Shown here: positions 33,862 to 36,800 of the stretch, one piece after another
How positions within the stretch are numbered: position 1 is the stretch's first letter
Layout: each line of letters starts with the position of its first letter
Assembly: GCA_964247055.1 (NCBI GenBank)
Contig: OZ176051.1
Location: 13,144,001-13,208,000, forward strand
DNA from: Paragordius varius
Taxonomy: Eukaryota; Animalia; Nematomorpha
Reading direction: 5' to 3'
Length of the DNA: 64,000 nucleotides
Notes under the pieces: model-generated
What the model was told of the DNA's origin: nothing
Seen by the model: only the letters and a program-made list of their open reading frames with translations
The model's database searches: none
Program-made: the position numbers and the translations under genes

Positions 33862-36800
33862 GTAATTGTAATTTAGATTATTTTAGAAAAAATTAAATCT
33901 TTTCTTACTACATTTTATATTGATGGAAGTGCTGGAAAAAATTATAAATATGCCGATGAATTGGTTTTGTTGATCTTATATTATAGACTAAAATAGCACA
34001 TAGAGAACAGGCTTCCCTGAAAATAGATTTGTGGGATGTGGAAGATTTTGACTTGGATTTATATTCAGCTATAATTAACAATGCTAAACGCTATGTAACG
34101 CTTTTTAGTGATTGTGTCAACGATTTATTACCAAATTACAAGCTCTACGAGGTTTCATATTGATATTTATTAATAAATATTTATATATGTAATAATGTTT
34201 TTCATTTTAGCCAGATGTTAGGGATCTTTTGGATGTGTATATCCATCACAGACTTTTGCTCGAACAACGTCAACAAAATCAGAATCGTGAAGCTAACAGT
34301 GAGGACCTATCTTCCTTGCAAAAGAGATATCCCGCTGAATTAACCCGTCGATTGTATAACTTACAATTTTTATTTGCTATATTTCCTTTTTAAGCATATT
34401 ATATAAAATCATAAAATTATTAGGGATTGACTATGAATAAGTTTTTTGAATGACATTTTAAGCGCATTTTAATTTTTTTTCAAAAAAATATAATTAAAAA
34501 TAGTTTTTGTCTAAAATATAAAATATTGGTAACGTTTTAATGAAAGCTAATTAATACAATAAAAACTAAAAACTTTCGGGCTCACTAATAAAATGGCCTT
34601 TTATCGCATTATTGAAAACAAGTCTACCTCATAATTGAAAATGCTTTTATGATCAAAAAAATAATCATTTAAAAGCCAACTTTCCAGAACAACTCCTATT
34701 TCAATCGTACTTTAAATTTTTTTAATCAATGATTACGAGAATATAACAACATATTTAATTGTAAATTTAGAAGAAATAATTTTAACACAATCTTAATTTT
34801 TATTATGAATTTAAATATCTGGTTTCATTATTTAGACGAAACTATTAAAATAATTACATTTTTTACTTTCACTATACAAAATTTATACAGATTACTAACT
34901 AACATTACTTTATATAACAAATACAGTCATGTATGTTTAGAATTGTCAAACATACGTTATTAATTGATTTTACTTTGTTTTTAATTGTTGACAATAAATG
35001 GCTATTATCATTTTAAGGCTTAAAAAGTCGCATGTTGAAAGTAGTTGACATATCAAATATCATAACAATTAAAAACAAAGAAAAATCAATTAAAAACGTA
35101 TGTTTGACAATTCTAAATATACATGACTCTAAGTTGCCACTATAAAACAAACGACACATCTTGTTTTTATTTACATATTATAATTGGCACAGTGAAATAA
35201 CTTTTGAACTCCACAATAATGATGATGGTAATGATTCAAGCGTTAATAATCAATCCAAGCCCTTAGCCCTACGTCAACTTAAAGCGTGTCACATTGGGAA
35301 ATTGGTTTGTGTTACTGGTCAAATTGTACGAAGTACGGAAGTCAAACCACTTATACAAGTGGCAACTTACACGTGTGATTTGTGTGGCGCTGAAACATAT
35401 CAACCGGTGTGTAGTCCTTTTATATATATATATATATATATACAGTAACGTATGGAGAGTAAAACAATATTAGTATCCATAAAAGAATAAAAAAAATGTT
35501 TTTTTTTCAAAAAAAATACAATCCTAAATGTAAATACATATATCAAAAATATCCCCTTGTTTTTTTAAGAAAAAAAAAGCAATTTTTTATTCAATTATGG
35601 ACTAATATTGTTTTACTCCATACGCTACTATATATATATATACCATTTACAAATTCCCTCTTGAACAATTCAAATTCACCCTTGAACAATTCAAATTCAC
35701 CCTAAAAATAAATTATGTTTTGAACTAATATAACTCATTATTAATATGAAATATATGTTTATGGTATAGTTTATTACTTTTTCAGTATTATTTGAATATT
35801 TTTTAAAAATATATAAAATATAGGTAATTTTTAATCTTAAAAAACATATATTTTATTTGAGGGCAAATTTGAATTTTTCGAGGGTGAATTTGAATAGTTC
35901 AAGGGTGAATTCGAATTGTTTTAAGTGAAATTAAATTGTAAATTTTATATATATATATATATATATATATATATTTAGACTGAAATTATACGGACAAAAC
36001 GTAATAAAGACAAATATTTTTCTCTAAATACAACTATACTTTTTAAAATCTTGATTTATATATCAATATGACTCATTGTTTTAAATGGGGCAAAGTATGA
36101 AATGGAAATATATATTACTAACACAATCAGTTCTATATTTTATAATTGTAATTAAATAGCTTATATGAGAAAAATTAATGTAAGTTGTGTGGAGCCGAAA
36201 CATATTAACAGGTGTGTAGTCCTTATATATATATATATATATATATATATATATATATATATACGGAAAAAACGTAATAAAGTTTTTTCTCTAAAATACA
36301 ACTATACTTTTTAAAATCTTGATTTATTTCAATATTACTCATAGTTTTAAATGAGGCAAAGTGTGAAATCGAAATATATATATTATTAACACAATCAGTT
36401 CTATATTTTATAATTGTAATTAAATAGCTTATATGAGAAAAATTAAGGTTTAAAAAGTATGGCTGTCTTTAAGATAAAAATATTTGTTTTGTCCGTATAA
36501 TTTCAAATTTTACTGTATATGTATATAGAGCAGGACAGAATGAGATTTGGCGGTATACATTATATAGTCAAAGGCTAATACAATCATATTGGTTTACAAA
36601 TATTGATATTTTTACGAAAATTTAATGTTTTAGCTTATTAGAAATATATTGGTCCAGTAACTTACTCAAATATTTTATAATTGTAATCATCAAGGTTGTA
36701 TTGAAAAAATAAAGTGTCAAAAATAAATATTAGTCTTTTATTTTTATTTTTTTTACAGTAATTTATTTTTAAGTTTGTGGATGAAAATTTACTTTTATTG

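Follow-up and report, generated by a model that had tools for sequence, protein, structure and literature searches.

Predicted 25- and 23-nt introns at ancestral positions in the MCM7 gene of the hairworm Paragordius varius

Two predicted introns shorter than 30 nt in MCM7

Two segments at the 5′ end of the MCM7 gene of the hairworm Paragordius varius, 25 nt (33862–33886) and 23 nt (33964–33986) in length, are very likely genuine U2-type (GT-AG) introns that occupy ancestral positions, have shrunk in this lineage and are predicted to be excised. The gene, which encodes a DNA replication licensing factor, is intact and located at positions 33828–49082 (+ strand) of the analyzed window, i.e. the whole 64,000-nt stretch of contig OZ176051.1 (positions 13,144,001–13,208,000), to which all coordinates refer. 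Both segments had been indicated by an inspection of the nucleotide sequence carried out without database searches (referred to here as the sequence-only reading), and their coordinates, lengths and GT..AG ends are exactly as given there.

The exons of the gene align with MCM7 proteins over their full length (tblastn) and match the Pfam domains MCM_OB, MCM P-loop (E 5e-33) and MCM_lid. Each located exon is open and conserved, and the joined protein shares 62–65% identity with its counterparts in molluscs, a priapulid, annelids and amphioxus. A profile search with a scaffold protein plus the MCM7 exons yielded 120 MCM7 proteins of full length, of which none was closer than 65%.

Exon 1 (33828–33861, 34 nt) begins with an ATG at 33828, placed in a Kozak-like context (GGCGCCATGG), and comprises 11 codons and 1 nt. 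It is followed by intron 1 (25 nt, phase 1), exon 2 (33887–33963, 77 nt), intron 2 (23 nt, phase 0) and exon 3 (33987–34151; 165 nt, i.e. 55 codons), the last of which corresponds to residues 39–91 of fly and human MCM7 (E 1e-10). The claim that retention of these segments causes a frameshift and an early stop was borne out by translation, since a stop appears within a few codons if intron 1, intron 2 or both are kept. When both segments are removed, no stop interrupts the frame between the ATG and the end of exon 5. Removal also yields continuous MCM7 homology, as had been proposed: the spliced 60-amino-acid (aa) N-terminus aligns with residues 3–58 of human MCM7 (E 7e-10), and the lone gap in this alignment is a single residue inside exon 2, with none at either junction.

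The status of exon 2 was examined with a profile of the MCM7 N-terminus, for which the first 37–42 residues were taken from 89 MCM7 proteins of animals. Exons 1 and 2 together (37 aa) score 40.5 bits (E 1.3e-14) with this profile. Exon 2 alone scores 31.8 bits (E 6.7e-12), far above the top score of 20,000 shuffled sequences (13.8 bits), and is therefore a real coding exon. A search of the PDB with the 25 aa of exon 2 alone gave no match. Since exon 2 contains no in-frame ATG and an in-frame stop (33874–33876) is located just upstream of it, this exon must be spliced to an upstream one. At its other end, only 23 nt lie between the last homologous codon of exon 2 (...ADEL) and the first codon of exon 3 (TKIAHREQ), and no residue is missing. 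Because exon 2 is coding and these 23 nt alone part ADEL from TKIAHREQ, intron 2 is very secure. Judged from the sequence, the tiny introns are almost certainly genuine, with intron 2 very secure and intron 1 probable as introns of this size.

Intron positions in orthologous MCM7 genes

The exons of orthologous MCM7 loci were mapped exactly in Priapulus caudatus, Branchiostoma lanceolatum, Pecten maximus and the fish Amia ocellicauda. Exons 3, 4 and 7 were fragmented in the first two MAFFT alignments, and those rows were left out. The supposition that the intron positions and phases are ancestral proved correct: in the multiple alignment, columns 11, 42, 97, 144, 216 and 262 are common with Priapulus, Branchiostoma and Pecten, and the introns of Amia are found at equal residue numbers and phases (e.g. 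10, phase 1, and 37, phase 0). In each of the four orthologues, a first intron follows residue 10 (phase 1), a second one residue 37 or 41 (phase 0) and a third one residue 92 or 96 (phase 0), and further introns are placed at residues 133–138 (phase 2) and 240–245 (phase 0); an intron at residue 194/199 (phase 0) is present in all of them except Pecten.

The exon lengths, which the sequence-only reading had given for vertebrate MCM7, agree with these data. The 55 codons of exon 3 are found in all four mapped orthologues, and the 46 codons of exon 6 in Amia, Branchiostoma and Priapulus, with exons 5 and 6 fused in Pecten. What differs is the length of the first two introns: intron 1 is 25 nt long here versus 232–12,118 nt in the four orthologues, and intron 2 is 23 nt versus 161–871 nt. 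It is not credible, as judged from these sequences, that the removal of two chance GT..AG segments would re-establish the reading frame in precisely the positions and phases of ancestral introns.

A helminth contig (UZAO01098972.1, assembly GCA_900618515.1) has no MCM7 intron 1 and carries introns of 34 and 36 nt at the sites equivalent to introns 2 and 3 of P. varius. The MCM7 fragment annotated on this contig (462–3660) is without exon 3, and a run of N interrupts exon 3 there. Because this assembly gap breaks the exon, the apparent lack of exon 3 in the helminth protein is an annotation artefact.

The position of intron 1 bears directly on its length. A donor at 33837 or 33831, joined to the acceptor AG at 33875–33876, would give an intron 1 of 40 or 46 nt and an N-terminus MVIIILEK... 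or MIILEK..., leaving intron 2 as the only one below 30 nt. Both solutions combine GT..AG ends with an open frame, the internal AG being present, and 40 nt is nearer to the intron sizes known in other animals. They score, however, 31.7–31.9 bits compared with 40.5 bits, which is 8.7 bits below the model with the 25-nt intron, and the (D/N)Y..(E/D)K match is lost; moreover, the intron would be shifted by 8–10 codons from the position and phase common to four other animals. A longer intron 1 is thus improbable.

Alternative splicing solutions

Several observations weigh against the model with the 25- and 23-nt introns. A reading-frame test comprising 80 GT..AG segments of 15–200 nt in the 5′ region, in all one- and two-intron combinations, showed that an open frame is kept by 11 solutions with one GT-AG intron and by 118 with two. 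The open frame by itself thus does not single out the model, which is instead selected by homology and the ancestral intron positions. The homology behind intron 1 spans 11 residues only, and the candidate branch points (CUUAU in intron 2, UUAU in intron 1) were read by eye only. Five small sequencing runs labelled "RNA?" contained 0.00 of the sampled locus words. Protein searches with exon 3 or the spliced 60-aa N-terminus retrieved no transcript-derived fragment in the allowed length range.

The one-intron solutions correspond to a distinct possibility, namely that the main mRNA skips exon 2 through an intron of 135–156 nt whose acceptor lies inside exon 3 or directly ahead of it, or that it starts elsewhere. 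Examples are 33837–33986 (150 nt) and 33862–33996 (135 nt), and such a choice would be expected of gene-finding software that accepts no intron below about 40 nt. Against this stands the conservation of the exon 2 peptide in the right place and register, which is unexpected for an intron, together with the presence of the ancestral exon 2 in all four orthologues. Skipping of exon 2 in the main mRNA is therefore very improbable.

Support for the locus in sequencing reads

Four sequencing runs were found to contain the locus. They cover intergenic and intron sequence, and are therefore DNA. A 1040-nt DNA contig from a second sample with the same organism label spans positions 33500–34424, and DNA contigs of two other organism labels (B and C) span intron 1. 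Compared with the window, the second-sample contig contains 11 gap letters, and the contigs of labels B and C show a 2-nt length difference somewhere within 33786–33938.

These data bear on the possibility that the frame breaks are false, arising from misassembly or sequencing error, or that the gene is a decaying pseudogene. The AT-rich and repeat-rich sequence is prone to errors, and no transcript was seen. Misassembly had been named in the sequence-only reading as a risk to its claim; the locus is present in DNA contigs from four runs, which shows that it is not misassembled. The contigs that span 33500–34424 and intron 1 likewise argue against an artefact, and two independent errors would need to fall at exact ancestral positions and to create a GT start and an AG end. 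In addition, all located exons are open and conserved, with 62–65% identity to MCM7 of other animals. An artefact or a pseudogene is accordingly extremely improbable.

Splice sites and proposed mechanism of excision

The intron positions would date at least to the bilaterian ancestor. In the lineage studied here, introns 1 and 2 would have been reduced in length to 25 and 23 nt, and the downstream introns may have been inflated to 0.27–2.3 kb or more by transposon and satellite insertions. The tiny introns would be minimal substrates that the ordinary spliceosome excises through intron definition, with a single short AT-rich stretch accommodating the 5′ splice site, a putative branch-point A about 6–9 nt before the AG, and the AG. 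By eye, the candidate branch A precedes the 3′ end of intron 2 by 8 nt and that of intron 1 by 6 nt, and each intron has a T-rich tail of 4–5 bases. Since retention of either intron gives a premature stop, unspliced RNA would make no MCM7. From the nucleotide sequence, we infer that both introns are excised, where their branch points lie and that a conventional spliceosome acts on them.

The 13 mapped MCM7 donors (33862–48468), belonging to short and long introns alike, follow the pattern GT(A/T/G)(A/T)..., with G at position +5 only once (46376). In the orthologues of Pecten, Amia, Branchiostoma and Priapulus, the majority of donors are GTAAGT or GTGAGT. The uniformly weak donors of this gene are the one indication that 5′ splice-site recognition may be relaxed.

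The excision of such introns might also need a lineage-specific alteration of the spliceosome, e.g. in 5′ site recognition by U1/U6 or through independence of U2AF and the pyrimidine tract. This is compatible with the introns being genuine. It would fit the uniformly weak donors, which differ from the GTAAGT/GTGAGT found at most orthologue sites, and the reduced 5′ and 3′ motifs reported in myxobolids and Dicyema (PMC13644364). On the other hand, 37-bp introns are spliced alongside introns of 3 kb within single flatworm genes (PMC6530080), and the U2 branch-point region and U2AF of myxobolids are conserved (PMC13644364). No part of the spliceosome is encoded in the window, where an Rfam scan gave no match to a small nuclear RNA or to any other family. 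The published data argue against a need for special machinery. A modified spliceosome able to handle both extremes had been proposed in the sequence-only reading; as put forward there, the idea is not supported, and an altered spliceosome is possible and rather unlikely.

Comparison with known short-intron systems

In a survey of 51 genomes, animal introns of less than 30 bp were found only in Myxobolidae (Henneguya, Thelohanellus, Myxobolus) and in Dicyema japonicum (Hadjez et al. 2026, PMC13644364). The survey ties introns of this size to genome reduction, both groups being tiny parasites with compact genomes (PMC13644364). The MCM7 introns resemble theirs (20–27 nt) in having GT-AG ends, conserved positions and weak splice-site motifs; in both cases, A residues occur a few bases before the AG and short introns adjoin short introns. 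The general setting is different. In Myxobolidae and Dicyema, the median intron measures 22–27 bp, the genomes are roughly 20–200 Mb in size with relatively few transposable elements, and the proteins are fast-evolving. Here, only 2 of at least 14 MCM7 introns are shorter than 30 nt, and the others range from 59 nt to more than 2 kb and carry transposons. The MCM7 protein shows ordinary conservation, and the tiny introns are a 5′ minority class (in one window), whereas in Myxobolidae and Dicyema they are the majority. The introns of those groups are supported by RNA, whereas those described here are known from genomic sequence.

A second resemblance is to the microintrons of the flatworm Opisthorchis felineus (684 Mb), which have a mode of 37 bp, with a second peak at 90 bp (Ershov et al. 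2019, PMC6530080). As in the gene studied here, the flatworm microintrons adjoin one another, are biased towards the 5′ end and lie beside introns of about 3 kb; the flatworm genome is large, and annotation pipelines miss its microintrons (PMC6530080). The size mode of 37 bp nevertheless exceeds the 23–25 nt found here. The sequence-only reading had set the occurrence of tiny and kilobase-sized introns in one gene against the typically compact genomes from which such tiny introns are mainly known. This coexistence is not without precedent, since flatworms already show clusters of 37-bp introns beside introns of about 3 kb (PMC6530080). In its N-terminal part, MCM7 shares 41% identity with the helminth protein and 50–51% with those of Pecten and Priapulus, and because the helminth value is the lower one, the gene shows no flatworm affinity. 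Together with the GC content of 27%, this led to the rejection of a schistosome-like flatworm as the source, and a myxozoan or dicyemid source is unlikely in view of the ordinary conservation of the protein and its transposon-rich surroundings.

Among unicellular organisms, ciliates have introns of similar length that are likewise AT-rich (about 25 nt in Paramecium, PMC5014332 and 10.1101/2021.08.05.455221; 15–16 nt in Stentor, cited in PMC13644364). As in MCM7, where the two introns measure 3n+1 (25) and 3n+2 (23), their retention leads to a premature stop. In these ciliates, essentially all introns are tiny, and kilobase-sized introns are not known in the same gene.

What is unusual here is an intron size of less than 30 nt within a 5′-clustered architecture, together with the lineage in which it occurs. 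A literature search found no publication on such introns in hairworms. It seems rather probable, on balance, that this lineage represents a third independent animal origin of introns shorter than 30 nt, and the first in which they form a 5′-clustered minority in a large, transposon-rich genome with multi-kilobase introns in the same genes. If this is true, the lower size limit of animal introns is not tied to genome compaction. By pairing introns of 23–25 nt with transposon-filled introns in the kilobase range, MCM7, a conserved housekeeping gene, would separate intron minimisation from genome compaction, and the pattern of 5′-clustered microintrons described in flatworms would be extended to still smaller introns and a further lineage.

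There would also be practical consequences. Gene finders that refuse introns below about 30–40 nt would truncate or lose many genes, inflating the reported "gene loss". Where a pipeline demands more than about 25 nt per intron, the 5′ ends of such genes would be mis-modelled; in MCM7, the 135–156-nt "intron" that skips exon 2 stays in frame. A preprint on the genome of the hairworm Gordionus montsenyensis gives a BUSCO completeness of 71.6%, and the word "intron" is absent from it. In our view, tiny introns could be a partial cause of the low BUSCO values that have been reported for hairworms.

Exon–intron structure of MCM7

The remaining exons and introns of MCM7 are also located on the + strand. 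Intron 3 (34152–34210, 59 nt, phase 0) occupies the ancestral position at column 97. The prediction that the three shortest introns are the 5′-most ones is thereby confirmed by the mapped lengths of 25, 23 and 59 nt. Exon 4 (34211–34353, 143 nt), with the junction translation RRF/EITFEL, was identified by tblastn to MCM7 proteins, and intron 4 (34354–35192, 839 nt, phase 2) contains an inverted repeat resembling a miniature inverted-repeat transposable element (MITE). Exon 5 (35193–35406), delimited by junction search, holds the start of MCM_OB (Pfam, E 8.8e-10). It is followed by intron 5 (35407–37670, 2264 nt, phase 0) at the ancestral column 216, exon 6 (37671–37808, 46 codons), supported by tblastn and junction search, and intron 6 (37809–39433, 1625 nt, phase 0) at the ancestral column 262.

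Exon 7 (39434–39655) contains the end of MCM_OB (Pfam) and is followed by a donor GTATAA right after ...DAH. A search of representative proteins with this exon returned fragments only. The exon carries a lineage-specific loop insertion of about 13 extra residues, located between ...IYLP and LLSSDTY. Fragments of helminth MCM7 have insertions at the same site of the loop, and their sequence is unrelated.

Downstream of exon 7, the 4.4-kb interval 39656–44063 probably hides one small MCM7 exon, which a homology search of this interval did not locate. The later exons, placed by tblastn, junction search and Pfam matches, lie at about 44064–44192, 44459–44542, 45248–45459 and 46194–46375, and the last ones, placed in the same way, at about 46933–47016, 47825–47996, 48358–48467 and 48827–49082, with the stop at 49080. 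The introns within 44064–49082 measure, in order, 266, 705, 734, 557, 808, 361 and 359 nt. The sequence-only reading had assigned introns of 0.3–3.4 kb to this gene. The presence of kilobase-sized introns stands, but the range has to be replaced by 266–2264 nt for the other mapped introns, plus the 4.4-kb interval.

Repeats and other features of the window

The MITE-like inverted repeat of intron 4 (34908–35163) has arms at 34922–34989 and 35064–35131, each 68 nt long and 94% complementary. In the DNA runs, its word depth reaches 150,000–250,000 over 34908–35099, compared with about 450–700 beside it, and the repeat therefore belongs to a very abundant family. The occurrence of this high-depth repeat within intron 4 indicates that the long MCM7 introns have been inflated by mobile DNA. 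The window as a whole has a GC content of 27.3% and carries a long terminal repeat (LTR) retroelement, hAT-like open reading frames (ORFs) and the MITE. Its GC content and repeat load are similar to those given in the preprint for the genome of G. montsenyensis (26.93% GC, 63.8% repeats).

Dispersed tandem arrays whose translation shows a repeated eight-residue motif (LKDQLELF...) were observed at 3913–4074, 39238–39435, 43877–44017, 57405–57623 and 57976–58167. One of them extends exactly up to the acceptor site preceding MCM7 exon 7; a second one is located just upstream of the exon at 44064.

The regions 9343–10490 (− strand), 16885–17934 (− strand) and 19200–22900 (+ strand) contain, respectively, hAT-like transposase ORFs, a 350-aa single-exon ORF of the G protein-coupled receptor type, with weak matches to 7TM_GPCR_Srw and 7tm_1, and broken ORFs. 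By eye, the broken ORFs resemble pieces of reverse transcriptase and integrase (retroelement pol). A Galactosyl_T gene (PF01762) is present at 53899–56134 (+ strand), with its frame broken at about 53998 and about 54840. Small candidate GT-AG introns whose removal would leave the frame open were found at 53983–54015 (33 nt) and 54828–54867 (40 nt), with no homology across the breaks.

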